Positions 411 to 61,900 of a stretch of 64,000 nt of DNA are shown piece by piece (the first letter of the stretch is position 1; every line of letters starts with the position of its first letter). This DNA comes from Stegostoma tigrinum. Its lineage: Eukaryota. The notes under the pieces are model-generated. The model saw only the letters and a program-made list of their open reading frames with translations, had not been told where the DNA came from and made no database searches. The stretch covers positions 25,538,647 through 25,602,646 of the forward strand of contig NC_081387.1 in assembly GCF_030684315.1 (NCBI RefSeq), given 5' to 3'. Both the position numbers and the translations under genes were made by a program.

Positions 411-642
411 TTTGAATGTTGGCCAGGAGACCAAGACAATCCCATTTACAGGTAGAAGGGGCTTAAGGACAAGTCTGCAGCAACAGGATAGCAAGGCTCA
501 ACTCATAAACGTTTGAAGGCTGGCGCCCTTGATCAGGCAGTGTCACTTTCCACTCCCACCTTGACATTGTCCCAGTGAATCACGTGATGAAGTTCTGTCA
601 GACAGCAAGGCATAAGAAGAGACAGGGTCAAAAATGACCTAC

Positions 643-14545: not shown

Positions 14546-15009
14546 ATTTGTGAACCAGATGGGTTTTTGCAACAATCAACAGCCATTGTTAAATTCTATT
14601 TTTCACTATTTGCATTAAACATTTAACCCTAACCCAAACACTGGAGTTTGGAATCGCTGTGCGATGATATACCACTGCCTTACTATTGGGCATGGGTTTG
14701 GAAAGTGCTGTTTAAAGACCCTTCGTGAATTTCTGCAATGTATTTTGTAGATGGTCCACACTGTGGCTGAGCATTGGTGATGCAGGGAGTGGATACTTGT
14801 GGATATATGCCAAACAAGCAGGCTGCTTTGTCCTGCATGGTGTCACGCTTCTTGAGAGTTATTGGAACTGTAATTCCAGTGGGAGGAGTTTGGAGGGAGG
14901 GACAATGAGAGACCGGAAGAAATATGTTCAGCCAGAATTGGCAACTTTCTCCCCAGTTGATTTGTGTTGTTTCAGACAGTTTGTGTTGATCTTACACAGC
15001 AAATTCTGC

Positions 15010-21300: not shown

Positions 21301-24300
21301 TGTAACATGCCACTGGACCGCAAGTTATAAATCTCCATCTTGTTTTGATGACAATGGAATGCTACTGACGGTCTGTTTCTTTCTCATATCATTGTGCTCA
21401 CCCTCAAGGTTATACAATAGTTCATTTGTTGAATAGAAAGAACGTGTTTTTTTTTGTCTTCATTGTAGCAGATACACCGAGTTTGAGAATTACAGTTCTT
21501 CAATAACAGCCTGTCCTCCAAACTGAATAACCGATAAAAATGATTAAAAATAAACATTGTAGTCTCGCTGAACGCAATGTGCTTAAGATGTAGCAGTAAC
21601 CAAGATGAGTGTCCATGAAGCACTTTTTTAGCTCATTCCGTCTCACGATAAACATTGATTTGCTGCTCCTTCCAGTTACATAGATGCACTAACAGTTTGT
21701 CCTTGCATTAATCAAGTTGATAACATTTGCTCAATGTTTTCTCGCTATGTTCTCAAGGTAATATTAACATTGCCTGGGTTCTCAGAGTGTGAGCTGGGCC
21801 TCTGTGTTGTACTGGGTGGAGAAAAATTTACAAGCAGAAACTCCTCCAAAACACTTGGAGGAGAAATCAGTTAATGCCCTGTTAGGTTGAGGACTTGTGG
21901 AGAATTGGGAGTCTGTTTTATGTCATGTTCAATGTTATTTTCCAAGGCAGATGAAATTGGACTTTAAGGAAGAGTAAAATCATGTCAGTTGTCATTTTCG
22001 GACACATGCCTGATATTTAAATCTGCTGAATTTAGCAAGGCGAAATATCAGGTGGTGACCATAATAGATGATGGAGTGTGTGTAATTCTGGAGCTCTTAT
22101 AGTTTCACTGGTAGCATCCTAAACAGTTTTATTAACAATATCCAGAATAAAATAGGCTTGGAATATGGCAGCAGCCAGTTTTTTACCCCTTCCTCCCCAT
22201 TTGTACTTTCCATGAAAGACAGTGGCATAATGGATAAAATGGGCTGGCAGGTCCCTGTCCCTATAGCCTGGCTGTAAAACTTATCCCAGTCCCTCTTAAT
22301 CTTCACATCAGAGTTTACTCTTATTAGCGACTCCCAATCAGTGGAAATGTTTCCCCATTGACCCAATGAAAACCTTCCCAAATCTTTAATAGAAACAGTC
22401 TCCCATAACATTCCTTGATACATCTCTGAGAATTAGGAAACATAGAAAATGGGATCAGGTTGAGGCAATTTGGCCCTTTGAGCCTGCTCTGCCACTTACT
22501 ATGTTCGTGGCTGATCATGCAACTTAACAGCCTGTTCCTGCTTCCCCCCCCCGCCCCATATCGTTTGATCCTCATGTGCTTGAAACGACTCCACAGCAGC
22601 CGGTATCCCATCACAAAATCCTCCTTTATTTGCACATGGAGCATTTTTGACACTGATTCAGATCCCTTAGAATCAGCTGTCAGAGTGACCAGGATGACTG
22701 ACACCCCTGTTTATATCTGTCAGCCAGTGCTCCCGATTGGACCAAGTTAACAGCCCTAATTAGGGAAATCATATTTTAAGAGGTTCACCTGGCTGACCTT
22801 ATTCTAATCATTGCATGCTATTCCCAACTGCTTCTTGAAATCATACAATGTTTTGACCTTGACTGCTTTCTGTGGTAGTGAATTCAATAAGCTCACCACT
22901 CTCGTGAAGACGTTTCTCATCTCAGTCATAAAGTCTGAATCCTTAGATTGTGACCCCTGGTACTAAATTTATCTGCCATCATTCACTGATCTACCATTGT
23001 CTGGCCCAGTTAACATTTTATATGTTTCCATGAGATCTCCCTTCATTTTTCTGAACTCCAATAAATATAATCCTAAATGAGTTAACCTCTCTTCCTATGT
23101 CACTCCCAGGAACCTGATAAACCTTTGCTTCATTTCCTGCATTGCCAGAACATCCTTCCCCAAATAAGGTGACAAAAATGCACGTCATATTCCAAGTGTG
23201 AACAAAAACAAAGTTGCTGGAAAAGCTCAGCAGGTCAGGCAGCATCTGTGGAAGAGAAAATAGAGTTAACGTTTTGGGTCCGGTGACCCTTCCTCAGAAC
23301 TCCTGATTTACAGCATCCGCAGTTCTTTTGGTTTTTATATTCCAAGTGTGGTCTCACCAAGGCTCTGTATGACTGCAGCATGATATCCTAGCTACTGAAA
23401 GACATCTCTGCTCTCCTTAAAGAATTTCCAATCTGTGAAGCCACTATACATTCCCTTTAGGGATAATTTCCAGTCTTGACGATTGGAGAGATATTTAGAC
23501 CAAAGTTTTTTTTTTCAAAGAATTATCGTATGGTACAAAAGAGGCCCTTTTGGCCTCTTGGCTCTACATCAACAGAAAACTGCTCTAGATATGCACCCAC
23601 TTTCTGACTCTTGGCCTATAGCTTTGAATTTTGTGATGTTTCAAGAGCTCATTCAAGAATTTTTGAGAAATTTTTGATAATGTTTTGACATCTCTACTAC
23701 ATTTCCAGTGCATCCCAGGCCCCTATCCCTCTCTGTGTGAAAGTTTCTTAAGCTATCAGTCACTAAGGACTATTGATAGGTGATAGCTGTTCTGTGAATA
23801 AATAATTAAGATGTTCTTCCCTTTATGCCTCTCTGTCTTGCAGTTCCAACCTGTTTGACTTTGGATCCTAACACAGCACATTCCTGGCTCATCCTGTCTG
23901 ATGACCTGACCAGCGTAAGATATGGAGACAAGGGGCAGTCTCTCCCTGAGACACCCGAGAGGTTTTACCCCTGTGTGTGTGTTCTGGCGTCAGAGGGATT
24001 CACATCTGGCAAACACTACTGGGAGGTTGAGGTGGGAAACAGTGCTGAGTGGGATCTCGGAGTGGTGACGGAATCCATCAACAGGAAAGGAGATATCACG
24101 GCCATGCCAGAGGCTGGTTACTGGATCGTGTGGCTGAGAAGGAGTGAGTATAAAGCTGGCACATTGCCACGTACCCTCCTGACCGTGGGCATCAAGCCCC
24201 GGAAGATCGGGGTCTACCTGGACTACGAGGAGGGGCAAGTGTCATTTTACAATGCTGACAACATGTTGCACCTCCACACCTTCAGCGATATCTTCACAGA

Positions 24301-24394
24301 GAAACTTTACCCTTTCTTCAGTCCTTGCTTGAGTGGTCATGGGGAGAACACAGAACCACTCAAAATCTGCTCCATGAAAGGTCATTGTCTGTGA
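15387..24394 (+). CDS. TRIM E3 ligase with RING, B-box2, coiled-coil and PRY-SPRY/B30.2 (TRIM39/TRIM69/nuclear factor 7/A33-like), 486 aa, 'TRIM-A'
   Basis: Exons 15387-15839, 17070-17162, 17266-17499, 19906-19928, 20031-20137 and 23844-24394 are all GT-AG, with phases 0,0,0,2,1 typical of class IV TRIMs. They sum to 1461 nt in an open frame. Motifs: RING CGLC..CGHNFC..C..CPEC; B-box CSEH..FCETD..ICVMC..H..H; B30.2 [32 protein letters not shown]. Confidence 0.93.
18770..19125 (+). mobile_element. Shark SINE (SacSINE1/DeuSINE-like)
   Basis: tRNA-like head, the conserved ggaaactgccatccttacc..tacatgtgactccagaccc core and an A-tail. A related decayed copy lies at ~29850-30250. Confidence 0.6.
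20330..21280 (+). mobile_element. CR1 LINE 3' part with a second CR1 tail nested at ~20525-20746
   Basis: The RT reading LVRPLLEYC | VQFW is split by a different CR1 3' end that terminates in cttatggtcttatg. Confidence 0.85.
23201..23336. mobile_element. 136-bp PLE pseudo-LTR-derived insertion with a 14-bp TSD and a mutated hammerhead
   Basis: TSD atattccaagtgtg at 23187-23200 and 23337-23350; hammerhead on minus at 23263-23302. Confidence 0.85.
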
Positions 24395-24756: not shown

Positions 24757-27170
24757 CTGGACACAGGGCAATATTGCTGTGCTGAACACAATGGACAGAG
24801 TCTGACTACACACAGGGCTGGATTATTGTGCTGAAAATAATGTCAGAAATAACACAACACCAGGTTATAGACCAACAGGTTTATTTGAAGCACAAGCTTT
24901 CGGAGCCTTAGTCCTTCTTCAGGTTTCAGAGAGAGAGGTAGTATCAGACACAGAATTTACAAGTGAAAGATTACCTTTGACAACGAGTTCTTCGTCCAGA
25001 CACAGGGAACAGCCATTGGGACCAGATTTGCTCGCCAAAATGTCAACATTTTCATGCACAGGTTTGAGCAAGACTTTGCTGTACAGAACCTCTGACCAAC
25101 GCTATACACCAGATACATTGACATTGGCATTTTTTTTCCTTTGGACTCATGGTGAGGAATCACTGAAACAACTTCATAGCAATATCAGACTTACCATGGA
25201 CTACTCTTTAGAATCAGTCTCATTCTTGGACACATGCATCTCCATCAAAGATAGTCACCTCAGCACATCACTACCGCAAGCCTACAGATAACCTCATGAT
25301 GCTGTACTTCTCTAGCTTCTACCTGAAACATATTAAAACAGCCATCACCTATAAAGAAGCCCTACACACACAGAGAATCTGTTCGGATGAGGAGGAACGA
25401 GACCAACACCTGAAGGTATTGAAAGATGCCCTGATAGGAACAGGATATGATCTTAACTCATCGATCGCCAGTTCCAACGTGCCACAGCAAGAAATCATAA
25501 TGACGCCCTCAGAAGACAGACACGGTATACATCCGATAGGGTACCCTTCGTCATCCAGTGCTGCGTGGGAGAGGAGAGACTATGCCATGTTCTTCACAGC
25601 CTTTAACAAATTATCAATGACAATGAGCACCTCAGCAAGATCCTCCCCAAACCTCCACTTCACACCTTCAAACAACTGCCAAACCTTAAACAGACCATTG
25701 TTCACTACCCAGCAAACTACCTGGCTTCAGGACAACATCGATCATAGTACTATACAACCCTGCTTTGGTAACCTCTGCAAGACATGTCAGATCTTCAACA
25801 TAGACACTGCTATCACATATGGGAACACCACCCACCCACATGCATGGCAGTTACTCATGTGACTTGGCCAACGTTGTCTGTCTCGTAGATTGCTGGCCAG
25901 AATGGCCCGAGGCATGGTACATTGGCAAAATTGTGCAGATGCCACAAAACAGATGAATGGACAATGTGCAATAATCGCCAGACAAGAGTTCCCTCCCAGT
26001 GAGGGCATATGTCAGCAATCAAGGGCATTTGGTCTCAGACCTTTGGATAAACATCCTCTAAGGCAGACTTCAAGATACACAGTAACACAAGAGTCACTGA
26101 GCAGAGGCTGTTAGCCAAGTCCCGTATCCACAAGGATGGCCTCAACCAGGATCTTGGGCTCATGTCATGCTATAGGTGACCCCACCACATGATACACTCT
26201 CAAACAGATCCTCTCTCATACACACACTCTCTCTGTCTCTCTCTACACTCCCCCAACACACAGACACTCACACACATACATACTGCCTAACCCCCAATCT
26301 CTCTCTTAGACATGGACACACACACACACACACACATCTATGTGGTGAATTTGTATTTACAGATACATTTTATTTTGTTCATAAAACACACAATTTATAG
26401 ACAGTCAATCAATAAAGTGTTTTATAAACTCCTGCTTTAGAAATAAAACCAGTCTGACTCCAAACTAAAACGCAGACAGATTCTAAACAAGGTCTCACAC
26501 CGAATATATATTGTCTGACCTAAAATGTCACCTCTTCTTTACGTTGATTAAACCTTTAGTCCTCTCAGGACTGTGATTTGAAAGGAATTCACAGATTTAC
26601 ATATTAATTATAATCATTTAAAGCCTTCTAATTGATTAAAGAGTTAAGAGCATCTTAGGTTTGTTTAGTGCATCCTCATCAATGGTGTGTGAACCTTTGA
26701 TCTTTTACTTATAAATTCTGTGGGTGATACTAAATCTCTCACTGACACCTGAAGAAGGACAGAGGCTCCGAAAGTTTGTGTTTTCAAATAAACCTGTTGG
26801 ACTATAACCTGGTGTTGTGTGATTTATGACTTGGCCCACCCCAGTCCTACACAGACACCTCCACATCCTGAAAACGATAGACAGAGTCTGACTGTACTTT
26901 GCTATGTTACTGTGGTGAAAACAATGGACAGAGTCTCACTGGACACAGGATGATATTTCTGTGCTGAACACAATGGACTGAGTGTGACTCTACACTGGGC
27001 TATATTACTGTACTGAACAGAATGGACACAGCCCTATTACTGTGCTGAAACAATAGACAGAGTGTGACTAGGTAGGGCTGTATTACCGCTCTGAACACAA
27101 TGGACAGAGTGTGACTGTACGTGGGGCTATATTACTGCGCTGAACACAATAGACTGAATGTGACTCACTA
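24757..27170 (+). repeat. ~44-bp degenerate minisatellite (..ctgtgctgaacacaatggacagagtgtgact..) split by the Penelope insertion
   Basis: About 2 units at 24757-24841 and about 7 units at 26868-27170. Confidence 0.8.
24842..26867 (+). mobile_element. Penelope-like retroelement, 5'-truncated, with an inverted pseudo-LTR at its 5' end
   Basis: Decayed RT (YQRYT-DI, SVSFLDTCISIKD), thumb (TAITY..RICSDEEERDQHL), Cys/His linker and GIY-YIG remnant. The pLTR at ~26697-26825 is inverted at 24842-24975, and both copies carry hammerhead cores. Confidence 0.88.
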
Positions 27171-38362: not shown

Positions 38363-41300
38363 CTAATGAAATCTGGACTGGCAGATTTTCAGTGGCTCTG
38401 AGCTCTCCCCATGCCCACTCAAGCAGGGACTGAAGAAGGGATAAAGTTTCTCGGTGAAGAGGTCAGTGAAAGTGTGGAGGTGGGACATGTCATCTGCATT
38501 GTAGAAGGAAACCTGGCCACCCTCATAGTCCAGATAGACCCCAATTTTGCGGGGTCTGGTGTGGAGCTTGAGGGGGGTGCGAGGCACTGAGCCTGCCTTG
38601 TAATCATGGCCGTTCCTCAGCCAGACGATCCAATAGCCAGCTTGTGGAACGGCTGTGATGTCCCCTTTCCTGTTGATGGATTCCTTCACCACTCCCACGT
38701 CCCACTCGGAGCTCTCTCCCACCACCACCTCCCAGTAGTGTCTCCCTGACATGAATCCTTGGGAGCCCAGCACGCAGAGTGAAGGGTTGAACCTCTCCGG
38801 GGTGTCAGGGAGCTCTTGCTGTTTGTTTGCGTATCTGACAGTGGTCAGGTCTTCTGATATGAGGAGCCATGAGTGAGCTGTCTCAGGGTTCAGTGTCACT
38901 GATGCCGGAACTGGTAGAGAGAGCAAGAGAGAAAGAGAGTGAAAGATAACATGAGAAACCAAGCAGATTGCAATACTTCAGCTTCGATTTATCCAAAATC
39001 TAAAAGATTTTATTCGACAGGCATTACGTTATACGTTATACTTTACTAAGAAATTACACACTGCACAAGCTTGAAATTTGAAATTTAACAACACAATTGT
39101 CATTAGTGCTCAGCGGCCTGTGGAGAGGAAGAAACAGAGTTAATGTTTTCGGTCTGATCACTGATCATTTTTCAGAACAGGAAACCGTTCGAGGTGAAAC
39201 TAATTGAACACAGATTTTAAAAAATGCAGAGGCAGAGAAGTGGGGTTGGGTAAATACAACAGGAAAAGTGTTGGCAAGGGTGGAAGGCAGGAGAGATTAA
39301 AAGAGGAAAGTGATGATAGTGAAAGACAAAAGGAGATAGTAATGGGATGAGAACAGAAAGGGAAGATCTGGAGGAAGGCAACAGGACCATTACTCGCACC
39401 AGCTGTTGGCTATAACTAGCTGGTGTGTCTCAGATAGAACTTTGAGCCATTCAGCTGTACAGCATGGAAACAGGCCCTTTGGTCCAATTCTTCCATGCTG
39501 ACCTGCTTTCCAAAATCAATCTAATCCCATTTGCCGGCATTTGGCCCGAATCCATCTAAACTTTTTCTATCCATGTACCTATCCAGATATCATTTAAATA
39601 TTGTAATTGTACCAGCCTCTGTGCTTCCTCTAGTAGCTCATTCCATACACACACTAACCTCTGCATGAAAAAGCTTCTCCTTAGGTACTTTTTATACCTT
39701 TCCCCTCTGATATTAAACCTTTTGCTTCTAGTTTTGATCTTCCCTACCCTGGGAAAATGGGAACCCTTGGCTAATCACTCTATCCATGTTCTCATGATAT
39801 TGCAGACCTCTGTAAGACTTGTTTGTGAAAGGCCTGCCAAATTATACAACAAAAATTTGACTGTAAGAGCTGGTATGACCTGTCAAAATTGGGCAATTCC
39901 CTTTCCACTTTTACTTACCAAAATATGTAAATTTATTATTTTTCTGCTGCAAATATTCTCCCAGGCGATTTTGTTTTTGTAGCATATAATGGTGGTTTTA
40001 TTCCCGTCAAAGCCATCACACACCCATTCAAAACTCCACATGTGAGAGTCAAGACAAGTTATAAAATGGATTAGAATATATTAGCGATAGGGTAGAGTTG
40101 AAGTGTAACCCAATGGAGACGCGTGAGGTTGAAAATTTATTATCAGAGATGTTGAAGGAGTACGTACTCAAATTATGAATTACAGAGGACACTGGACATG
40201 AATTAGGCAGGCAAAAACACCTTAAGGAGCGAGCTTCCACACCAATGCCCCACCCACTGCTTCCCATGACCACCTTCTGCCCTAGGTCTGCAGAAGTCAT
40301 ATTGGACTTTAAGACATCTACAAACTCACACTAAGAGCGGAAGAGAATCATCGACATCTGTGAGGGATTACTAATGATGACAATGTTCAAATCCAACAGG
40401 ATCTGGACAACATCAAGGCTTAGGTTGACAAGCGGCAAGTAAATTTTGAGCCATGCAAATGCCAGGCAATAACCACGCCTAATAAGTGACAATCTGACCA
40501 CTGCCCCTTGGCATTCAGTGGTGTTACCATCTCTGAATCCTCGACTATCGACAGCATTATCAATGAGCAGAAACTCAACTGGGCTCACCACATAAACATC
40601 ATCGCTACATGAGCAGAGAGTGAACCTGCACTATCGGAGAGTGAACCTACATCAGCAGAGGGTGAACCTACATCAGCAGAGGGCGACCCCACACTGCGAA
40701 TCAGGAAATCTACACCATCAGCCAGGGAACATATACAGAAAAGCAAACAGACAAAGAGAAACAGAGTTAATACTTCAAGTCCAATGGTTCTTCATCAGAA
40801 CTCAGATTTCCAGTATCCACTGTTTGGTTTTATTTCAGTGTCACCCTTCGCAGAAATGTTTTTAAGTGAAGGGTTCTTCCTTACAAGCACAAGGCTAAAT
40901 GATGCTTAAACAAATAAAGGGACCACAAATAGCATGGGTTCAATCAGATAAGCGTTTGCTGAATCTCAAACAGACCCCCTGCCCTAGGCTATTCCCAGAC
41001 ATGTGTAAAATCCCAACTTTTGGGATGAGCTGGCCAAGGTAAGACCTTAAGAAGGAGCACACAAGACAGTCCATATCCGGAATTACATTTTCAAAAGGGC
41101 TCTGTTTCAAAATGACACAGTAATGCTTTCTCCCCATTCTGTCTTCCAAATAGGAAACATAAAAAATTGTTGACATGTCAACGTTCGCCTGGTAGCCACA
41201 CTTAGTTACAGTACATGTACAGCTGGTTCAGTCAGTGTGTAACAATGTTTTACATTTGTTCTCCAACACTGTATATTGGTCAAGAGCCTTGCAGTTCCTG

Positions 41301-44300
41301 CTCATTGAGCGGGGTCATAACTTAGCCTTGAGGACAGGAACATGGTAAATTTTGGTGGACGCTCATTTATTCTGACAGCTCGTGACATACATTTAAGCAG
41401 AAAAAATGTTGTCAACATGTAGGACAAGGTTCCTCAGTTTGTCAGACAACCTCCCAAATGAATGAAAGTTGGAATGGTTCAAGGGGGAAGGACCTCTCAC
41501 CTGGGCTGATGCTCTCTGCCATTTCCTTCCAGGCAGTATACTGCAAAGGTCCTCGGAATATTCCCATTGGCAAGCGGTCAGCAGCCAGGAGAAGCTGGCC
41601 TGAATCCTCGCTGATGACAGAGAACAGCAACATTACACGATGGAAGTGACGGCGAGCGGATGTGTCAGGTTGCAGTAAGTTCACAGGAGCACATACCTCA
41701 TCTGTTGTTCAGCTTGATCCTAAAATACAACAAACAGGAGGGACCTGAGTTCCAGTGGATGATGGTGCCAGGTGAAGCAGAAGGGGGAAAGATTCATACA
41801 CCAAAACCAAGCACTGAATCACATCACCAGAACTATGAGGAGGCAGAAATGGAAGATGGCCACTCAGCCGTCTCTCTCCAACCTGTTCTGCATTGAACTA
41901 TGATGGTTGTTCTCTGATCTTACCTCCAGCCATCCTGCCCCTCCCAACCCTGACTTGGTTCCACAGCTTTTCCTCAAACAAGAATCAGTCTTGGATGTGA
42001 TTCAATTGTTTTTTTTCTCATGTGTGTGGAGAGATTTCCATTCTCATTTGAGTGAAGAAATGCTTCCTGAACTCATTGTTGAATGATTGAGCTCCACATG
42101 TAAGGGTTTGCATCTTGTGTCACACTATAGATACCGTCAGGATTTGTCATTGAGTTATACAGCACAGAATAGGCCATTTGGCCTATCAAATCTGTGCAGC
42201 TGATTTACATTAATCCCACTGAGTGTGTGCAGTATCTCTAAAGCTTAAATAGATGCATCGAGTCCTGCCTTTTAAATATTGTTACTGGGTCCTGCTTCAC
42301 ACAGAGAGAGACTGTGTAAAAACTAAATGCTCAGGTAAACACATCAAGGATCTCGCAACATCTCCAGCCAGAAATCTGGGTTTCACTAACTCTTCACAGA
42401 TCAGGCAAGAAAAGATTGAGGGCCTTGTGACTGCCTTCTCTATATGTTCAAAGAATGAAAGCTGATTTCATTGAAGCTAACAGAACTCTCATGGGCGAAA
42501 CAGGGTGGATCTGGAAAAACAGGCTCCCCTCACAAAGGGATTGAGAACTGGGGGACCACAGACTCAGGATAAAGATTTAGGGCTAAGATAAGGAGGGATT
42601 TCTTCTGAATCTTTAGAATTCATTACCCTGAGGCCCGTGGACGTTCTGCCAGTATGTTTCATCAAGACAGGGATCATTAGGTATTCAAGACCTGAAGGGA
42701 TAAAGGACTACTGCAGGAAAATAGCTTTGAAATGGAAGATCAGCCACAATCTAACTGAATAACAGAGAACATAGAACATAACAGAACAGTACAGGCCCTT
42801 CGGCCCTCGATGTTGTGCCGACCTGTCATACCAAACTGAAGCCCATCTAACTTATACTATTCCATGTACGTCCATATGCTTATCGAATGATGACTTAAAT
42901 GTACTTAAAGTTAGTGAATCTACTACCGTTGCAGGCAAAGCGTTCCATACCCTTACTACTCTCTGAGTAAAGAAACGACCTCTGACATCTGTCCTATATC
43001 TTTCACCCCTCAGTTTAAAGCTATGCCCCCTCGTGCTCGCCGTCACCATCCTAGGAAAATGGCTCTCCCTGTCCACCCTATCTAACCTTCTTATTATTTT
43101 ATATGTCTCAATTAAGTCACCTCTCAACCTTCTTCTCTCAAACGAAAACGCCCTCAAGTCCCTCAGCATTTCCCCATAAGACCTTCCCTCCATACCAGGC
43201 AACATCCTAGTAAATCCCCTCTGCACCCTTTCCAAAGCTTCCACATCCTTCTTATAATGTGGTGACCAGAAGGTTCAAGGGGCTTAATGACCTCCTCATA
43301 TTCCTGCCTCCCACCATCTGTAGCCTTGCCCTTGCCAAGCATTTCTGGAATTCTGTCCTGCAAGGGCTTCTTACAGCCATATGACTGAGTTTCTGTAAGA
43401 GTACATGCTGTCTTTTGGATATGATGTTAAATTCAGGCCCATCTGCCCATGTACTTAGGCCAAAAACATCCTGACATGATGGAGGAGACCAGCAGTTATC
43501 TCTCAGTGGGAGGTTTAAGAGTTTTCCATCGACCACAATGATGCCAAAAGGATAATATGGTCAATGCCTTATCTTCATGGGATCTTGCTTTGTAAAATCA
43601 GTTGCTGCATTCACTACACAATGATAGTGACTACTCTTCAGAATAATACTTCAATGGCTGACATATCTTGTGGTCAGTGCTACATTCCAGACAAAACCCA
43701 TCCGTTCAAGCATTAATCACCTGCCCCAACTTTCTCCATTGGTTGTGAGTCAATGATTTATGGTAAAGCTGATGCTGGGCATGACACAAAGCTAAATTGC
43801 TGTTGCAGTCTTTTGGATAAGAACCCGTGTAGGATGGGTCTGTAACAGAGCTTGTGGGTTCCCTTGCTCCCAGGTGTGTGAGAATTTCAGTGGAGAGAAG
43901 GAATGGTGGAAGTGGGGAGAAGGAGAAAGGTTTTCTTTCCCGTGTTGCTCTCTTGCTGTTTGAAGAGGGTTTGGGGGGGTGGGGGCAGGGTGGAGGCATG
44001 GATTTACTGCTCTGGGTGACGGCGACAATTACCTTTAGGAAGGCGATGGTGTCTTCCTTGTCCAGCTGGGTCTGCGATCTCGACAGCTTTTCCTGGATGT
44101 TATTCAGGTTCTGCTGGATGTCCAGCAGGTTTCTCTCCAGCTTGTCCGAGATAATCTCCACGTTCTCCTTCAGCTCCAAAACCAACCGCTTCTCCGTTCG
44201 CATGAGGATCTGGTGCATCTTCGCAAACTCGGACGTAATGAATTCCTGCAGCTGGCTCGTCTGATCCTATAGGAATGACAACTTTATCATCAGAGCCCAG

Positions 44301-46257
44301 ATAAAAGGAGGAGAGGGCGGCAGACAAGAAACAGGGGGGTACAGGAGGGGAAATGCATGAGAGGAGGGCAGATTGAAAACTTACCCCAACCTCTAAAACG
44401 TGCTTCTGCGCTAGTTTAGCTTCCAGGAGCGTGGACTTGGCCCAGAGAATGTCGGACAGGGATTTTAGCTTTTCCTGAAATTCAGATGCGGAGGGTGAAT
44501 GAGTTTGTTCACAAATTGAAATGTGGGGGAAATGCCACTTTAGGAGGTGGCTGGATCTGCCGTCACACCCATCGAACCCCACCCTCACATAAGCCACCAG
44601 GAGAGGGTCATTGTTACAGATGCACCAAATTGTCACAGTCAAATTGTTAAAGTAGGACAGTCAGCCCTTCTTGTTGGTACTAGCTCTCTGAATGAGCAAT
44701 GTGCTCAGTACCTACTCCCTGCCACATTCTTCCTTTTCAGATGACAGTCTAATTCCCTTCTGAATGCCTCAACTGAACCTGCGTCAACCATTCTCCCAGG
44801 TAGTGCATTCCTGATCCATTCGTTCTGTAAGAAATTTATTCCCATTTCCTGTTGTTTTGGCTTCCTTGACTAATTATGTTAAAATTCAGTCCCCTCATTT
44901 TTAATTTTTTTGCAAGTTTGAACATTTTCTCTCTTTCTCCCCCTGTCTCTGTAACTGACACTCCTTAACTTTGGAATTGTTCTCTTGAATTGAGAATCAT
45001 ATGGTGGATATGTCCACGAATGCTCGTCGACAGTTGATTGGTGTGAAGTTAACTTTGCTCCCTCACCCGTTGGGAAAATGGGGCGCACGCCAAAATTACA
45101 CCAGAGCAGACTCAATGGGCCAAATGGCCCACCTTCTCCTCCTACATAGTCTTATGGTTTTACAGCCACGTCCTGTTAAATAGAATGGACATGTGTTCCC
45201 GCAATACTAGGCAGGGTAGATATAGGAAGGATGTTCCCAATGACCAGGGAGTCAGAACCATGAGCCACAGTACAAGGATATGGGGTGAACCATTTAGGAC
45301 TGAAGTGAGGAGAAATGTCTTCACCCAGAGAGTGGTGAGCCTGCGCAATTTGAAACCACCGGAAGCAGTCAAGGCCAAGATACTGTATGATTTCAAGATA
45401 GAGTAGGATATAGCACTTGGGCCTAAAGAAATCCAAGGCTGTGGGGGGAAAGCAGGGACAGGCTATTGAGCTGGATAATCAGCCATGGTCAGAACGAATA
45501 GCAGAATAGGCTCACAGAGCCGAATGACCTGCTCCTACTTCAATGTTCCCATATTTTCTGGAAGAGTCACTTTGGATTCCTTGCCTCACAGATGTTACTA
45601 GAGTTGAGCTGTGTTTTTATTTTGGTTCATGGTCCCAACACTTACTGCTTTTCTTTCAGATGTTCCAGCATTTTTGATTCTACAGGAAAACGTTTTGATT
45701 TTTTTTCTTTTATTATTTTCTACCTTGTACATCTCCACTGCTTCACTGATGAGCATGAAGTTGTGGGAGCGGTGATTCTGACCCTCTCTGCTGTCCAGGC
45801 ACATCACACAGATCAGCTCCTTATCTGTCTCACAGAACAGTTTCAGCTCCTCTCGGTGTTGCCCGCAGTAGAAGGGGAGCTGCCTCTGCTCTGTCCCGGG
45901 GCACGGATCTGCAGCCCCGGGCTCCTGGGGACGTGGCCTGGGGCTGGCTTCAGCTTCCTGTTCGCTCCGCTGCCGGCTTGCTAGATGGGCTCCGGTTCTA
46001 CCCTCCTGCTGCTGGAAGAGGCTGCGAGCCCGCTCCGCCAAGTTCCCCAGCGCCCGGTTCGGGCGCAGCCTCCTCTCCTGGAAAACCTCCCTGCACTCGG
46101 GGCAGGAGCTGGCCTCGCTGTCCTCCCAGTAGCGCTGGATGCATCCCTGGCAGAAGTTGTGGCCGCAATCCAAGATTACCGGTTCGGCGAACAGATCCAG
46201 GCAGATCGGGCAGTTCAGGTACTCGGCCAGACCCTCCTCCTGCTGCCTGGAAGCCAT
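38363..46257 (-). CDS. TRIM E3 ligase with RING, B-box2, coiled-coil and PRY-SPRY, paralog of TRIM-A, 512 aa, 'TRIM-B'
   Basis: Exons (minus) 46257-45724, 44474-44385, 44266-44033, 41719-41697, 41610-41501 and 38910-38363 are GT-AG with the same phases as TRIM-A. They sum to 1539 nt in an open frame. The protein starts [23 protein letters not shown] and its B30.2 ends [10 protein letters not shown]. Confidence 0.93.
40612..40735 (+). repeat. 21-bp tandem repeat (gtgaacctacatcagcagagg), about 4-6 degenerate copies
   Basis: Direct inspection; lies in the last intron of TRIM-B. Confidence 0.75.
42765..43270 (-). mobile_element. Young CR1 LINE 3' end
   Basis: ORF 42852-43244 [29 protein letters not shown] is intact to its stop, followed by an (agaacat)n tail. 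Confidence 0.9.
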
Positions 46258-47356
46258 CGGCCGCGGCTCCGACGCAAATTCCGCCGTTAGTTTCCCTCTG
46301 CGCCTGAAATCATGTTTGTTCCTGACGCCGGCCGTGCGGATGAATCCGAGAATGACCCTGAAGCACAGCAACAAACTGTTAGTGCTTGGGATGTGCGATT
46401 CTATTGGCTGCCTATGTGGTGCTGATTTTATTTTGCTTTTGTTTTTTTAAAAAAAGCAAGTTCTGGATTATTATTCTAATCCGATATTTTCACAATTGAG
46501 TTTTGTTTTGTCGTTGTTATAGAGTTGTACAGCACGGAAACGACTTGTTCATGCCGACCAGATATCCTCAATTAATCTCAAAACATTTGGCAGCATTTGG
46601 CCCATATCCCACTAAACCCTTCCTATTCGTATATATTCATTCATCCAGAAGCCTTTTAAATGCTGTAACTGTACCAGCCCCCACCACTTCCTCTGGCAGC
46701 TCATTCCATACACACACCACCTCTGCGTGAAAAAGTTGCCCCTTTTAAATCTTTCCTCTCTCGCCTTAAACCTAGCTCTCTAGTTTTGGGCTCCCCTACC
46801 CTAGGAAAAGACATTGACTGCTCACACTATCCATGCCCCTTATGATTTTATAAACGTCTATAAGGTCACCCCTCAGCCTTTGGTACTCCAGGGAAAACAT
46901 CCCCAGACTGTTCAGCCTCTCCCTCTAGCTGAAACCCTCTGTACTTGTGAACACCTTTGCAAATCTTTTCCGAATCCTTTTGAGTTTAACAACATCTTTT
47001 CTACAGCAGGGAGACCAGAATTGCATGCAATATTTTACTCATTCCTGGGATGAGGCCTTCATTTAAATATAGCTTATCCCTATTTGCTGTTGAGCGGAGC
47101 GGCTCGTTTTCAGTGGGCATGCAACAGCCAGTGCCATTGTTGTTGGTCTGGGGGGTCCAGGTTGGGTCAGGCTAACAGATTACCTTCCCTCGGTAATGTT
47201 TGTAGACCCAATAGTTTCTTTTTAAACAACATTCAATGATAGTTTTCTTACTGAGTTAAGATTTGTAATTCTAGAGTTTATGAATTTAGTTTCAATTTCA
47301 CTAGCTGCCCTGGTGGGATTGGAATCCACCTTCCTCAGAAATCATTTTAGAAAAAG

Positions 47357-48955: not shown

Positions 48956-49940
48956 TAAAGGAGAGACCATTTCTCCTTTGGCTGATTTAATTGTCTTAGC
49001 ATCTCAGATTAATACCTGTATATTCTATTATCATTTATAAGGATACTGAGGGCACTAAGATGATTGGAATATGGATGAGGTAGGGATTGAGAGGAATTTG
49101 TAAAGAGACACTGTATCACTCTGAAATGGAATGCACTGTCCAATAGATGTATAGATTCAGTCGGAACTTTCAAAAGGCAATTTGTGGTCGACACAATGAG
49201 GGAAGTCTAACAGGGCTATGGAAAAGAGCAAGGAAGGTGGGAATACTGCATATCAGAGTGCCATCCAGGGGCATGATAAGTCAAATGGCCTCCTCCTTGC
49301 TGTATGATTTCAGTGATAAGTCCACAAATGGATTTGTGTTAATGCTGGCACTCACCCATACAAGGAGCAGCCCATAAAATAGGATAAGGTTTTGATGGAG
49401 ACTTGGACAGACGTTGTCTGATAGCCCACCTCTGAGGGTCTGTCTGATGTCTGGAAGGAACTGATCTGAGGGCTACAAATTGTAATATCAAATACAAAGT
49501 GGCTGGACCTAAATGATAATATGGGAGATGTGTAAATCTGGCAAAGTCCATTGGTGACGTTTATATTAGTTTGGATTGATAGAATGGTTACAGCACCGAA
49601 GGAGGCCATTTGACCCATTGTATTGGAGTGGGCATTCTGCAGGAAGAACTCACCTTGCCCCACTGCCGATTGGAGGCGTTCCTCGTTACCCTGCAAATTT
49701 TTCTCTTCTGATAATGATTCAATTCTCTTTTGAAAGGCTTCAGTCAATCTTCTACCACACACTCTTAACTCAAAATTTTCAGATCCTAACCAGGTTATCC
49801 ACTAAATTCTTTTGTTTCCTTGCATTGCCCTCGATTCCTTTGCCAATCTTCTCAAATCAATGTTCTTTGGTTCTTGATCCCTCGAATAATGGGAACAGTC
49901 TCCCCTTATTTACTCTGTTCAGACCCCTCTCGGTTTTTAA

Positions 49941-50250
49941 CACAACCTGGAGCTGGATGAACACAGCAGGCAGTAGAGAGCTGATGAAGGGTCTGGGCCC
50001 GAAACGTCAGCTTTTGTGCTCCTGAGATGCTGCTTGGCCTGCTGTGTTCATCCAGCTCCACACTTTGTTATCTTGGATTCTCCAGCATCTGCAGTTCCCA
50101 TTATCACAGGAAAGATGACGTTCCGGGTGAAGAAGGGTCCCGACCCGAAACATCAGCTTTCCTGCTCCTCTTATGCTGCCGGGCCTGTTCCTCCAGCTCC
50201 ACACTGTGTTATCTCAAGACTCCAGCATCGGCAATGCTTGCTATCCCTTT
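49941..50250. mobile_element. Short PLE pseudo-LTR composite with an intact hammerhead core at 49981-50010 (+)
   Basis: The sequence ctgatgaagggtctgggcccgaaacgtcag, flanked by an imperfect tc(g/a)gtttttaa duplication. Confidence 0.75.
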
Positions 50251-51144: not shown

Positions 51145-52736
51145 AGCATTGAGAATAGCTCATTGAGAGTTTACCGATGAGGCTCACTAATTTCTTACGG
51201 AGTCAGCCCCTTGGATCAGGACAGCATTGCTGAAGAGTGATCAAATCTCGAAAAAACAAGGGAAGATCGATAAATGTTGTTGTGTGCAGACACATCTGAC
51301 AAGAATGAACGAATTTAAAAGCAGAAGGGAATCTGGGTGAGGCTTGAAAATGCAAGTGCGAGACGGAAACCAGGAAGCCAACGTCCACATAGAGAATGAT
51401 TAATACTTAAAAGGATTTCTTGGAGGAACAGGATCGTCTACCAGTGCACCTTAAAAGCCCAAAAACAGTCACTGTGAAAGTGAACCAATGGAATGGGTGC
51501 GGATGGTCGTCATTTTCCATGTCATGAATCCCCGATGCAGAGAGTGTACGTGTTCGTATCAATAGGGCAGTTCAAAGAGCCTGCTAAGGAAATCTGGTAT
51601 TGGTAGGGTGAAACTCTGAGACTGACAATTACTGTGAGTCTCACATATCATGTCTCTGAAAATGAATGTCTTATACGTTAAGTTCACCTATACACCATGA
51701 CTGATGGTAGCAGAAAATAGAATGGACCAATGATGGAGATAGCAGTGTAGGCTTCCCAAATTGATTGAGGAAGATGGGTTAAATGTCCAAATTAAATCTT
51801 CTGTGAAGCGACATAAGATTTTGAGGAAACTAGGTCATAATTATGATCGCTGCTGATGGTATTACTGAACAAGTATGATCCTACAGTGTAAACCAGCTTG
51901 ATAGACCATCAGTCTTATTTTTGCAGTTGTTACTGTTGTCAGTCATCGAACTTATTCACAAAAGACCACCAAAATTCTTTTAATTAAAGAGCACAAACAT
52001 ATTCAGCTGAAGCACACACAGAAGAAAGATTCAGACATTTTCCCAGCACTATCCTTTACAGTTACCCAATCCCAGCAAGCTTTACTTTAACCTTCACTTT
52101 AAGATTTCTTATTCAACAGACTTTTCTAGCCCTTAGCTATGGGCCTTGAAAAGGCCTGAAGATTTCTTTCCAGCTCTGATGGCCTGGACACCTTTGAAAC
52201 TTGACCTATCAATTCTCAACCTAGTGCTTGTATAAACTAAATTCTCAAATTCTGGAGAGTTATGCAAATTAAAATCTGCACTTCTGCTGATTTGACTTCT
52301 CTTCTTCTGAACTCATCCCACCAGTAGTCCCTGAGCACATGGCCTTCTGTGTACTATAAAAATTGGACTTTATAAATGCTGTATTAAGTGGAAGTTTGCT
52401 CATCATTTAACTGAAAGTCAGCCACTTCCTTGGAATAGTACCCTTTTCCTTCACTGTTAAAAATGATTTTCAGACCCTTTATTTATAAAAGGTCTTCTTC
52501 AAAGAATGAAAAACTGAGATTTATTTACCTCTACTTCATAATCCAAACTATTGCATCAAATTGCAAATTATTATAATAACCCCCATCCCACAAAAAGAGA
52601 TGTCCTGAGGAGGCATCTTCATTTTCTCTTAAAATTTCTCTTATCTACTTTGATAGTTATCATATATTTACATTAAACATGCAAATCTTTTTTATAACAA
52701 CCATGTTCTACATAAGCCTATTTTGATCATGACATT

Positions 52737-52980
52737 ACAAGGTGTAGAGCTGGAGGAACACAGCAGGCCAGGCAGCATCAGAGTAGCAGGAAAGCTGATG
52801 TTTCAGGTCTGGACCCTTCTCCGGACCCAAAACGTCAGCTTTCCTGCTCCTCTGGACCATTCTCCAGACCCAAAACGTCAGCTTTCCTGCTCCTCTGATG
52901 CTGCCTGGCCTGCTGTGTTCTTCCAGCTCCACACCTTGTTATCTCAGAATCCAGCATTGGCAGTTCCTACTACCTCTCAG
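52737..52980. mobile_element. 244-bp inverted PLE pLTR insertion with a 14-bp TSD
   Basis: TSD ttgatcatgacatt at 52723-52736 and 52981-52994. Confidence 0.85.
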
Positions 52981-52994
52981 TTGATCATGACATT

Positions 52995-55962: not shown

Positions 55963-58900
55963 TCAGTGGTGTTTTGCTATTTCTAGGACTTCTTTGCAAC
56001 TGTTTTGTTTCAAAATAGGGACAAAACCCTCATCTTCCTGGATTGCGACTGTCCGGGGGCAAATCTTCAAGGGGTCTGCGTTTTTACCCCCATCAGCGAG
56101 TGAAGAACTGAAGAAGGGATAGACTTTCTCAGTGAATGTGCCAGTGAAAGTATAAATGTGGTTCTTGTTCTCTGAGTTATAAAAGGAGACCTTTCCTCTC
56201 TCATAATCCAGACAGACTCGAATCTTTTTCACATTAACACCAGGCTTTGAGCATTTTGATGATGTGTCACCAGCCCTGTTCCTATTCCCATCTTTCAGCT
56301 TAACCGACCAGCATCCATTTCCTGGAATTAAGCTGAACATCTCGTTCCTGTTGATGGACCCATTGACTACACCGACTGTCCACTCGGTCTGGTTCCCCAC
56401 CTCCACCTCCCAGGAATGTTTGCCTGATGTGAATCCCTCCGACGCCAGGACATGGACACAACGAACAAATCGCTCTGGATTTCTGGGAAGCTGCTGCTGT
56501 TTCCCATTACAACTCACGGTGCTTAGGTCCTCAGACAGGAGAAGGTCAGGATGGGCTGTATTAGGGTCCAAGGTGATTGGAGCTGGAAACAGAGAGACGT
56601 TGATAAAATGTTAATCATACTCACTGTAACTTTCACAGCGGTTTGGAAAATCAATAATGAGCCACAATTTCCTGGGGAAGAAATTGAGAAAGAACAGTGG
56701 GAAACGGGAAGCCCCAGCCGGGGGAAAGTTTTAACTGATGGGCACCCTCTGCAGTGAGGATGGGAAAGTCCCATTGCAGGGGGTTAGAGAGATGAGTCCC
56801 CTGATTAATTTGTGTTATTCTGTACCAGAACTCCCCGGGATCCTGGGAGAGACAGAGTATAAAGTGAATGAGACAAAGAGTGAGAGATGAGTGTGCATGC
56901 ATGAGACAGTGTATGTAAAATTGAGACACAGAATGATGGAAAGCGTGTGAAAAAAGTGGTGTTTTAGAGAGAATACATGCATACCTGTGAGACACTGTGT
57001 GACAAAGAGAGAGAATTACACACTGTGTATGCAATTAAAAGCGAGACATGGAGTAGACTGTGGAGTGAATTTATCCGCCATCTCAGATCCCATGGAACCA
57101 GAGTGGAAGCAAGTCACAAGAACAGAATAAGAAGCCTTTCCTGATCCTGGTGAGGCTGGGGACTAAACAGAGGAAGAATGTACAGTCAGAACAAGTCAGT
57201 GTGTGTGTGTGTGTGTGTGTGTTTGTACGTGTGTCTGCTTGTGAGGGTGAGTTCGCGTGTGCATGTATGCGCGCGTGCGTGTGTGTTGCTTGATAACGCT
57301 CTTGCCCTAATCTACTTTGCTCAATAACTTCAAAAGACAGTGTCGTTCATTGGCATTAGAGTACGTTACGTACAACTATGAAATGTATCAGCGTGATATT
57401 TCCATACTTACACAGCTTTGAGGATTGGATCTTACCACTTGGGCTCCTTACTCCAAAATATTCTTGGCAAAACAATTCAGCAGCATAAATCTGCAGCTCG
57501 CACGGTTCGAAATCAGAACGAAAGTGGGGGAAGTATTCAGCAAGCCTGGCTTCCTGAATGCTCCTAGTCATTTCTGGCGATTTGTGTATCGCATTGTATT
57601 TGATCGAGAACAACATGAGCCGAGAAAAGGGCTCTGACTATTATCGAAGCACTATCCTTACACAGTTGACCAAACACAATTATTATCTTTACAGAAATTC
57701 ATCATTGCCGAACAGATATTTGTGCAGACTTCAACACCATGTCACTCTGGTTTTGGACATGACTAAATCTTGATATTTTGAACCAATGGGCTTCTCTCCA
57801 TCAAAAGGTCAGAAGTGGGAATGTTCACTGATGATTGCACAATGTCCATTCCTAACTCCTCAGATACTAAAGAAGTCCATGTTCAAACGCAACAAGTTCT
57901 GTATAATATAATAAAATGTGAGGCTGGATGAACACAGCAGGCCAAGCAGCATCTCACGAGCACAAAAGCTGACGTTTCGGGCCTAGACCCTTCATCAGAG
58001 AGGGGGATGGGGGGAGGGAACTGGAATAAATAGGGAGAGAGGGGGAGGCGGACCGAAGATGGAGAGTCAATGGGAGAGAGATTCCCTGAGGTTGGTCCGG
58101 AGGGAGGAGGGTAACTTCTTCAGGTTAGGCATCCCTGGAAGAGGCTTCGCAGTGAGGTTAAAATAGTATCAGAGATAATGGGAACTGCAGATGCTGGAGA
58201 TTCCAAGATAATAAAATGTGAGGCTGGATGAACACAGCAGGCCAAGCAGCATCTCAGGAGCACAAAAGCTGACGTTTCGGGCCTAGACCCTTCATCAGAG
58301 AGGGGGATGGGGGGAGGGAACTGGAATAAATAGGGAGAGAGGGGGAGGCGGACCGAAGATGGAGAGTCAATGGGAGAGAGATTCCCTGAGGTTGGTCCGG
58401 AGGGAGGAGGGTAACTTCTTCAGGTTAGGCATCCCTGGAAGAGGCTTCGCAGTGAGGTTAAAATAGTATCAGAGATAATGGGAACTGCAGATGCTGGAGA
58501 TTCCAAGATAATAAAATGTGAGGCTGGATGAACACAGCAGGCCAAGCAATACGGACCAACCTCAGGGAATCTCTCTCCCATTGACTCTCCATCTTCGGTC
58601 CGCCTCCCCCTCTCTCCCTATTTATTCCAGTTCCCTCCCCCCATCCCCCTCTCTGATGAAGGGTCTAGGCCCGAAACGTCAGCTTTTGTGCTCCTGAGAT
58701 GCTGCTTGGCCTGCTGTGTTCATCCAGCCTCACATTTTATTATCTTGGAATCTCCAGCATCTGCAGTTCCCATTATCTCTGATACTATTTTAACCTCACT
58801 GCGAAGCCTCTTCCAGGGATGCCTAACCTGAAGAAGTTACCCTCCTCCCTCCGGACCAACCTCAGGGAATCTCTCTCCCATTGACTCTCCATCTTCGGTC

Positions 58901-61900
58901 CGCCTCCCCCTCTCTCCCTATTTATTCCAGTTCCCTCCCCCCATCCCCCTCTCTGATGAAGGGTCTAGGCCCGAAACGTCAGCTTTTGTGCTCCTGAGAT
59001 GCTGCTTGGCCTGCTGTGTTCATCCAGCCTCACATTTTATTATCTTGGAATCTCCAGCATCTGCAGTTCCCATTATCTCTAAGTTCTGTATAATATCCAG
59101 GCTTGGGCTGAAAAGTGGCAAATAGCATATGTGCCAAACAAATGTCAGGCAACAACCGTCTCTAGGAACACACAATCTGACCACTGTCCCTTTACCTCCA
59201 GCCAGAACATCAACTGGATCAGCCATTTAAATACAGTGGTCACTAGGGCAGATCAGAGGCTAGGAATCCCACAGAAGTTAAAGTCCCTGGATGCTCAATG
59301 ACATTATCATCACTGAATCCCCTGCTATAAATATCAATTGATGAAAAACGAAATTGGGCCAGCTATATAAATACAGCGATCACAAGGACAGGTTAGGGAT
59401 TCTGTGATGAGTAATTTATTTCCTTTTTTCTCAAAACTTGTCCACCATGCACAAGGCACAAGTCAACAGTGTGATGGAATATTTCACACGTATCTGAATG
59501 AGTGCAGCTCCAACAACACTCAAGAAGCTTGATGCCAATCAGGACAATGCATTTCAGTTGACTGGCACTATTTTCAACATTCACTCCCTTTGACACCAAT
59601 GCTCAATGAGAGCAGTGTATACTATCTAATAAGATGCACTGCAGAAATTCACCAACTCTGCTTAGGCAGTACCGTCCAAACTCATCCAGGGGAGAATAAG
59701 GGTGGCAGATATATAGGAACACCACTATCTCTAAGTTCCCCTCCAAACCACTCACTATCTTGGCTGGAAATATATCGTTTTTCCTTCACTGTCACCAAAG
59801 CCTTTTAAGAAGTGTTCTTGAATTTTTCAGCCAAAATTTGAAATTATTTGTCTCATCTGTTATGGTTCTTTCCTGAATCTAGTAGTAGCTTAAAGTGATT
59901 GTTCATATTTAGACAACTAGGTAAATTTTTAAGCATTCAGATGAAGATAAATTATGGACAGAAACATTGAGTTTTGATTGACTTAAGGATCTTTTAGGTG
60001 CAAAGAACAAACAAAGAACAAATAAAATTACAGTACAAGAACAGACCCTTCAGCCCTCCAAGCCTGCTCCAATCCAGATCCTCTATCTAAACTTGTTGCC
60101 TATTTTCCAAGGATCTGTATTCCTCTGCTCCCCGTCCATTCATGCATCTGCCTAGATACATCTTAAATGCCGCTATTGTGCTCACCTCCACCACCTCCGC
60201 TGGCAACGCGTTCCAGGTACCCACCACCCTCTGCATAAAGAACTTTTCACGCATATCTCCCTTAAACTTTTCCCCTCTCACCTTGAAATCGTGACCCCTA
60301 GTAACTGAGTTCCTCACTCTGGGAAAAATCTTCTTGCTAGTCACCCTGTCTATACCTCTCATGATTTTGTCAACCTCAATCAGGTCCCCCCTCAACCCCC
60401 ATCTTTCTAATGTAAATAATCCTAATCTTCTCAACCTCTCTTCATAGCTAGCACCCTCCATACCAGGCAACATCTTGGTGAACCTCATCAGCACCCTCTC
60501 CAATGCATCCACATCCTGTTGGTAATGTGGTGACCAGAACTGTACACAGTATTCCAAATGTGGTCGAAACAAAGTCCTATACAACTGTAACACGACCTGC
60601 CAACTCTTGTACTCAATACCCTGTCCGATGAATGAAAGTATGTCATATGCCTCCTTCACCATTCTATCGATTTGTGTTACCACCTTCAGGGTACAATGGA
60701 TGTGAATACGCAGCTCTCTCTGTCCATCAATTTTCCCCAGGGCTTTTCCATTTACCGTATAGTTCGCTCTTGAATTGGATCTTACAAAATGCATCACCTC
60801 ACATTTGCCTGGATTGAGCTCTGTTTGCCATTCCTCCACCCAACTCTCCGGTCTATCTATATTCTGCTGCATTCTCCGACAGTCCCCTTCACTATCTGCT
60901 ACTCCACCAATCTTAGTGTCATCTGCAAACTTGCTAATCAGACCATCTATAACTTCCTCCAGATCATTTATGTATATCACAAACAAGAGTGGTCCCAACA
61001 CAGATCCCTGTGGAACACCACTGGTCACAGTTCTCCATTTTGAGAAACTCCCTTCCACTACAACTCTCCGTCTCCTGTTGGCCAGACAGTTCTCTATCCA
61101 TCTAGTGAGTACACCCTGGACCCCATGTGACTGCAAGTGTCATATTCAGTATTGTGGGTCAACCTACAGAACATGGACTGCAGTGCTTCAAGAAGGCAGC
61201 TCACCACCACTTTCTCAATGGCAACTTGGAACGTTCATGTCCCACAAGTAAATTTTAAAAAAAAGTTTTGTAATCCCTTCCAGTCACTGTCTGAATAATC
61301 CAATGGTCAAGCTGTAATTAAATAAACAAATTTGGATTTAAGATTCAGGAAGTGTGGAAAGCAACTGCCCCTTCAGATAACAAGAGACAACATTAATGCA
61401 GATATCATGTTAGATAAGAAAAGGGAAATAGAGTTTACCACGTATGAGGATTGGAGATGTGGTCAAGAAAAATTTGATTTCACTGAATGTGCTTTTCTTT
61501 GATGAAGCATGGATTTGGTAAAATTTAAATGTTTCTGTGAAACATATGGTCTAACATTAGAATGACACTCAATCACATCTGCGTTGATATCCTTGACAAT
61601 GTTAAACTAAGATTTTAATGTACATGAGCACAGTTGAGGTATCATTGTTTATCACTCAGTTAATTTAGTTCAGTGCCCACAGTGGAAGGTAAATCATGGG
61701 TCAATTTGGTCACAGCAAATATTACCATCCTTAACATTTAATGAGTCTATTTTCAAGAAATTAACTCATTGCTTTAGAAAATAGCTTTCCATTTCTACTT
61801 CCTATGTCCCTGGTCTCAAGTATTACTGAACATGTGGGGCATTGGACATATAAAAGGTTTGATTTCCAAATTTTACCAGTCACTGTTTGATCATGAACTT

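Follow-up and report, generated by a model that had tools for sequence, protein, structure and literature searches.

An inverted multimer insertion with minimal hammerhead motifs in Stegostoma tigrinum, a probable non-autonomous derivative of a Penelope-like element

Transposition of Penelope-like elements (PLEs) is poorly understood, and its sole biochemical model, that of Poseidon PAc from Anolis carolinensis published in 2024, holds that the PAc protein cuts and extends both target strands, that reverse transcription (RT) starts from two internal sites, and that the interval between these sites forms the tail (PMC11167929). PLE insertions form partial tandems, often with an adjacent inverted copy, and have a 30–40-bp tail at one end only (PMC8557442), and the hammerhead ribozymes of PLE pseudo long terminal repeats (pLTRs) are of the minimal type defined by Cervera and de la Peña (PMC4209133). 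The non-LTR retrozymes of animals were described by Cervera and de la Peña in 2020 (PMC7229834) and by Li, Clavereau and Pollet in 2026 (preprint 10.64898/2026.07.22.740005), and the latter work reports, from one cartilaginous fish, retrozymes that derive from PLE pLTRs and have consensus sequences averaging 363 bp. Here we describe an element of 1171 nt at 57910–59080 of a 64,000-nt stretch of the Stegostoma tigrinum genome (contig NC_081387.1, positions 25,538,647 to 25,602,646 of the forward strand; this whole stretch is referred to as the window). The element is a single insertion between two copies of a target-site duplication (TSD). Its two arms point in opposite directions, and each of them repeats one 300-nt unit head to tail at a period of exactly 300. 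Its anatomy most probably records one young retrotransposition event of a non-autonomous mini PLE, a reading to which we assign a probability of about 0.72.

Compared with PAc, the locus likewise has a hammerhead where the pLTR meets the body and an AUG inside or beside the hammerhead core. In the unit the AUG lies inside CUGAUGA, the predicted cut falls 25 nt after it, the long-tail end lies at +125 and the putative body segment reaches to ~+225; in PAc the hammerhead is at the open reading frame (ORF) start, the cut falls 26 nt after the AUG and RT starts ~111–118 nt into the ORF (PMC11167929). In both, two RT start sites lie ~100 nt downstream with a 30–40-nt tail between them, both target strands appear to be used, and the RT start on the long-tail side is not homologous to the target. 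PAc is autonomous, whereas here the whole ORF is missing, the frame from the AUG stops after 13 codons, and the target is AT-rich only in part. Like Penelope of Drosophila virilis and PLEs in general, the element shows partial tandems, an adjacent inverted 5′-truncated copy and a tail at a single end (PMC4209133, PMC8557442), and a minimal hammerhead in which a base is bulged after A9 and helix I, as in the D. virilis variant, is limited to 2 bp (PMC4209133); those elements are full-length or 5′-truncated autonomous copies, whereas here a 300-nt deletion derivative occupies inverted multimer arms. MRC1 of Chlamydomonas, a non-autonomous derivative of Chlamys PLEs, is similarly short and pLTR-forming and makes multicopy head-to-tail insertions, but it belongs to another PLE clade with an N-terminal endonuclease, has no canonical hammerhead and resides in a green alga (PMC8557442).

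With the non-LTR retrozymes the element shares non-coding tandem units of a few hundred bp, one hammerhead per unit for which paired action is expected, a TSD of more than 4 bp and derivation from PLE pLTRs, and with at least two consecutive tandem units bearing a canonical or minimal hammerhead it falls within the working definition of the preprint (10.64898/2026.07.22.740005). It departs from the 2020 description in that the hammerhead is of the minimal PLE type, not a canonical type I with loop 1–loop 2 contacts, and in that the GC content of the unit is 52%, not below 45–50%. Its organization also sets it apart from retrozymes, for in place of a long array one TSD encloses two short multimers in inverted orientation, and it is known from one locus and as DNA alone.

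Anatomy of the inserted element

The two TSD copies, AAGTTCTGTATAATAT, lie at 57894–57909 and 59081–59096 and match perfectly over 16 nt. Between them, the left arm (57910–58548, minus strand, 639 nt, 2.13 units) has its outer end at unit position 190 and its inner end at unit position 152, so that in the RNA sense it runs from unit 152 across two unit boundaries to unit 190; its outer end reaches as far as unit 192–195 if AT microhomology with the target is counted. The right arm (58552–59080, plus strand, 529 nt, 1.76 units) runs in the RNA sense from unit 1 to position 229 of the second unit, which is its outer end, and the inner ends of both arms are separated by a 3-nt filler, ATA, at 58549–58551. 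Sequence inspection found a single mismatch in 1168 nt, at 57957, against three agreeing copies of this unit position, and each unit retains its six CpGs. Since only 1 of 1168 bases differs and the CpGs are preserved, the insertion is young. The window contains no N bases.

No ORF longer than 59 amino acids was found in the element, and hence no ORF of the RT plus GIY-YIG type that characterizes PLEs; therefore, the element is non-autonomous. These results agree with the earlier note on this DNA, which had described near-identical 300-nt units, a perfect 16-bp TSD and the lack of reverse transcriptase and endonuclease. Its description of the units as tandem holds within each arm but not for the element as one tandem array, because the two halves are mutually inverted. 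This inverted arrangement and the unequal arm ends, neither of which the earlier note had drawn on, are the features most telling on mechanism.

Hammerhead motif and parent family of the unit

The unit carries the minimal hammerhead motif CUGAUGA-A-GGGU(CUAG)GCCC-GAAA-CG-UC, which occurs on the plus strand at 58653–58680 and 58953–58980, with predicted cuts after 58680 and 58980, and on the minus strand at 57971–57998 and 58271–58298, with predicted cuts at 57971 and 58271. The four CUGAUGA..GAAACGUC cores, two per strand, and their cut sites are thereby located exactly as had been proposed. Using a strict minimal-hammerhead descriptor, 8 matches were found in the window versus 0.03 expected from 200 shuffles, which indicates that the motif is not a chance occurrence. 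Half of these matches lie outside the element, one of them, at 49981, closely related and the other three of two further types, and the motif is therefore conserved across several PLE lineages of this genome. The three further minimal hammerheads are found at 24894–24922 (minus), 26749–26777 (plus) and 13403–13436 (minus); one kind has GAAAGCUU, with the palindrome AGCU in place of ACGU, and is inverted on both sides of a decayed PLE-like body at 24977–26114, and the other kind has a 7-bp helix II.

The unit motif shares four of the five sequence hallmarks described for PLE minimal hammerheads (PMC4209133), and these published hallmarks lend further support to the PLE assignment made previously. 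The CUGANGA box is followed by the GAAA box with helix II between them; an unpaired A follows A9; a G10.1–C11.1 pair stands at the base of a 4-bp helix II, GGGU/GCCC, with the loop CUAG; and helix III has no loop but consists of the palindromic ACGU (15.1–16.1), so that two copies can pair. The fifth hallmark, a helix I of 4–5 bp, is absent: motif inspection confirmed the warning that helix I is only 2 bp here (A-U, G-C). A sister subfamily in the window has a 5-bp helix I, GAGUU/AACUC.

RNA folding predictions for the monomer, the dimer and the circle did not recover the hammerhead fold, and the predicted minimum-energy fold of two copies was, though this is not decisive, a plain duplex and not a double hammerhead. 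Scoring against a hammerhead model, a check that had been proposed for this motif, brought no support, as the Rfam hammerhead models gave no match at the gathering cut-off or at E≤10; a motif that lacks a helix III loop would be expected to escape them. Other Rfam matches, to MIR408, BTnc201 and H19, were rejected as artefacts of the inverted repeat or of base composition.

By its sequence, the unit derives by deletion from a PLE family that is very abundant. To avoid the long internal repeats, public Logan contigs, contigs only and from four runs, were compared with 58741–59500. All parts of the unit were at very high copy in organism A and were present in organism B. Unit 101–229, which comprises the hammerhead and ~100 nt, has ~18 further copies in the window according to nhmmer, and in two samples of one organism its summed contig depth was several orders of magnitude above that of the flank. 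The first part of the unit, segment A (58884–58952, plus), corresponds to the last ~70 nt of the PLE 3′ untranslated region (UTR), that is, of the pLTR, and lies 5′ of the hammerhead; it was recognized from loose contig ends and from blastn matches to 13540–13599 and 14171–14240, which adjoin a PLE endonuclease C-terminus. Segment B (58781–58883, plus) corresponds to ~100 nt of putative PLE body. In contigs of organisms A and B the tail runs straight into 58781–58880, and therefore segment B is contiguous with the tail in the parental copies, which it follows. The tail itself, 37–39 nt between the two RT start sites (59042–59080, plus), is present at the right end of the insertion only.

The internal deletion junction, CCCATTG/ACTCTCC with CTCTC microhomology, lies at 58877–58890 (plus) as judged from Logan contigs and sequence inspection, and identical copies at 58577 (plus), 58061 (minus) and 58361 (minus) bring the number in the element to four. 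Parental copies take a different sequence after 58880/58883, and where copies cover the region from 58885 on, what comes before it is another, well-agreeing sequence, ..CTCCTCTCCACCTATCTTC.., which matches the 3′ UTR of the PLE fragment in the window. Measured against the high-copy parental copies, the breakpoint that the earlier note had named, 58880–58885, is real, and the rest of the PLE, including the RT and GIY-YIG ORF, appears to have been deleted at the CTCTC microhomology.

Because Pfam returned no match on the PLE-like ORF fragments of the window, the PLE identity was drawn from phmmer and from Pfam searches on the relatives so found. The window copy at 13447–14546 keeps, upstream of its hammerhead, an ORF C-terminus (13775–14032, minus), whose relatives include P0035, with an RVT_1 domain followed by a weak GIY-YIG match below the Pfam cut-off, and P0042, with 54% identity at E 1e-15 and the motif ..YIGETRRRLG... 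A reverse transcriptase followed by a GIY-YIG nuclease is the PLE architecture. The 3′ UTR after this ORF resembles unit 56–125, and the unit sequence is derived from a PLE pLTR or 3′ UTR.

The fragment at 13447–14546 itself has inverted arms, the minus arm holding the endonuclease C-terminus and the 3′ UTR, and in the pair at 14248–14462 both inner arm ends lie within 2 nt of the hammerhead-core start. The nearest relative of the unit tail, at 49981–50106, is 95% identical and has a short inverted arm (49938–50245); an inverted-pair insertion of a different subfamily stands within the next 20 nt, such that the elements adjoin one another.

Arm ends, proposed mechanism and rival explanations

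The outer ends of the two arms are unequal, the right arm ending at unit 229 (long tail) and the left arm at unit ~190 (short tail), and both positions are usual 3′ ends of the family, of which long-tail and short-tail copies both occur in the window. Hundreds of family contigs end at the equivalent long-tail position, 58783–58785, and all four of the other inverted pairs in the window combine one long-tail arm with one short-tail arm. The element thus bears the insertion signature of PLEs, namely a head-to-tail tandem with an adjacent inverted copy, a 30–40-bp tail at a single end, and ends at the two RT start sites of the family. The long-tail RT start has no homology to the target, and the short-tail end has 2–5 nt of similarity to it. 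The interpretation of the locus as a non-autonomous, internally deleted PLE derivative inserted as a multimer, as had been put forward before, is upheld: its TSD, its tail, the positions of its ends and its combination of tandem and inverted copies are all signatures of PLEs.

Several further observations concern the ends of family copies. A PLE tail insertion at 52723–52994 has arms at 52726–52824 (minus, short tail) and 52863–52975 (plus, long tail) with an extra partial copy between them, and this inverted pair (52726–52975) has a 14-bp TSD, TTGATCATGACATT. Genome-wide, the Logan contigs showed that family copies most often begin at the hammerhead-core start (58949–58952) and not at the predicted cut site; a transcription start, an RT stop or a ribozyme-cut end could each be the cause. 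A rarer joint puts the tail end beside the first base after the cut (58981). Recurrent opposite-strand joints from the long-tail end to the short-tail position (58781/58785, 59044, 59080) were found in 13–30 contigs per run, an indication that existing copies, too, tend to be broken or inserted into at the two RT start sites.

For the retrotransposition of a mini PLE, we propose that a PLE protein supplied in trans would cut both target strands 16 bp apart, and that each target 3′ end would then prime RT, with the long-tail site (unit 229) serving one strand and the short-tail site (unit ~190) the opposite one. Both cDNAs would grow inward over 1.8 and 2.1 units, and host repair would join them with the three filler bases ATA, to leave two inverted multimer arms within a 16-bp TSD. 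Hammerhead cleavage would not be needed. The enzyme, the priming on both strands and the form of the template are what we infer here; the anatomy, the PLE derivation and the match of both ends to the usual ends of the family are read directly from the DNA. In vitro, PAc requires the stretch from +20 to +172 of the ORF in its RNA, and its insertion can do without hammerhead cleavage (PMC11167929). By analogy, the unit would keep the whole region equivalent to this minimal template (+20 to +172 from the AUG), including the part downstream of the RT start.

The cDNA is seamless over the four predicted cut sites and the four deletion junctions, and the units are identical apart from one base; therefore, repeated jumps on cleaved monomers, or four identical template switches, are unlikely. 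The template is thus one that was unbroken over at least 2.1 units (639 nt), either a linear concatemer or a circle. A concatemer from a tandem master, which is the published model for PAc (PMC11167929), is the likelier of the two, because helix I is weak, PAc uses uncleaved multi-copy RNA, and the circle is only putative.

Some points weigh against the mini-PLE account. Only the right end of the element was compared with the Logan contigs, and the central and left junctions are those of the assembly. The naming of segment B as 5′ body or ORF region draws on its contiguity in other copies and on the analogy with PAc, and the ORF start that had been proposed at ATG CCT AAC.. is putative. Given the 2–5 nt of target similarity, microhomology priming is possible for the short-tail arm. 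No PLE protein or RNA was seen acting at the locus, and neither a second locus with the same deletion junction nor a tandem master was found, in metagenome and viral scans that could not have shown shark DNA.

The foremost alternative is a full retrozyme cycle, in which 300-nt monomers would be cut by paired hammerheads and circularized, and a PLE reverse transcriptase would copy the circle for more than two rounds on each DNA strand. The near-identity of the units and their seamless run across all cut sites and junctions are what a circle would give, and the agreement of the motif with most PLE hallmarks speaks for it, as does a weak joint, 58782 to 58981, that sets the tail end beside the first base after the predicted cut. 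The idea of a circle was put forward for PLEs in 2014 (PMC4209133), and retrozyme circles are described in other animals (PMC7229834). Set against this are the 2-bp helix I and the plain duplex predicted for the dimer, the poor cleavage of minimal PLE hammerheads in vitro (PMC4209133), and the finding that 8 of 9 Xenopus retrozyme dimers were not cleaved (preprint 10.64898/2026.07.22.740005). The Anolis PAc hammerhead is cleaved only in the presence of its protein, and PAc inserts uncleaved RNA (PMC11167929). As a concatemer accounts for the same facts, we hold the full cycle to be unlikely though not remote, and we are a shade more doubtful still of its strongest form, that the locus is a genomic fossil of rolling-circle RT in which a dimeric PLE enzyme copied a hammerhead-processed 300-nt circle for more than two rounds per cut strand.

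It is improbable that the element is a one-off product of normal PLE RNA, its deletion and multimers having arisen from repeated template switching at CTCTC with no heritable 300-nt family behind it. Such an origin would suit the microhomology at the junction and the failure to see another locus with this junction, as metagenome-contig scans were blank and no bridging Logan contig was listed. Yet it needs four identical switches on two independent cDNAs, and other short derivatives with different junctions occur at raised depth, e.g. the joint 58859 to 58947, which is present in two Logan runs and would give a 213-nt unit. The blank searches, for their part, could not have shown shark DNA: the exact-pattern scans for the junction and the hammerhead covered metagenome contigs and viral contigs, collections that are not expected to hold it.

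Very improbable is L1-style twin priming by the enzyme of a long interspersed nuclear element (LINE) acting on a transcript of PLE origin, or the creation of the palindrome by later DNA rearrangement or as an artefact of assembly: inverted arms with filler, the 2–5 nt of similarity at the left end, the LINE RT ORFs present in the window and the known trouble that tandem and inverted PLE structures cause in assemblies (PMC8557442) would fit one or another of these. Against them stand the lack of a poly(A) or LINE tail, the coincidence of both outer ends with the PLE family's own two 3′ ends, the start of the inverted arm at the usual short-tail site, the pairing of one long with one short tail in the other four inverted pairs too, the enclosure of the whole structure by the TSD, and the presence of 86–89% of the sampled words of 57500–59500 in runs from two samples. 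A DNA transposon or foldback element was rejected, since the tail is missing from one arm, so that the termini are not mutual inverted copies, and since no cut-and-paste superfamily is compatible with a TSD of 16 bp, and an independent post-insertion duplication in both arms was rejected as unparsimonious.

Genomic neighbourhood and significance

The exon nearest to the element is a PRY/SPRY exon at 55963–56586 (minus), 1.3 kb away. No RING, B-box or coiled-coil exon of its gene was found in the window, and the intronic position proposed earlier for the element is plausible, the TRIM35-like identity of the gene being putative. This exon belongs to a cluster of TRIM-like genes at 15387–24394 (plus), 38363–46374 (minus) and 55963–56586 (minus); the first two have a RING/B-box exon and a PRY/SPRY exon, the second also a coiled-coil exon (43706–44218, minus), and the upstream exons of the third lie outside the window. 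Farther away, the ORF at 533–1045 (minus) has an immunoglobulin V-like signature, ..LTIKGLRQEDSARYYC... The arms of the element are pairable over 378–495 nt with 100% complementarity around a ~152-nt loop (57905–59080), and if the neighbouring TRIM-like gene transcribes across the locus, the transcript would carry a long perfect double-stranded RNA hairpin from this ~0.5-kb inverted repeat.

Functionally, the element is a non-autonomous PLE derivative. It founds no new category, as the literature already covers retrozymes of vertebrates, including those of a cartilaginous fish, and their descent from PLEs. Its value is that of a clean, young and almost unmutated example, and the anatomy of its two ends is in accord with the PLE model derived in vitro: the pattern that the PAc model predicts from the cutting and extension of both strands and from two internal RT starts is seen here in a genome, with one arm starting at each site, and the retained RNA segment matches, by analogy, the minimal template determined in vitro. 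If the rolling-circle reading were true, a cartilaginous fish would provide in vivo evidence for retrozyme circles as the real transposition template, and the locus would lend support to the priming of both strands from two RT start sites observed in vitro. That the template was a concatemer or a circle gives a well-defined substrate for testing the cleavage and circularization of shark hammerhead units.

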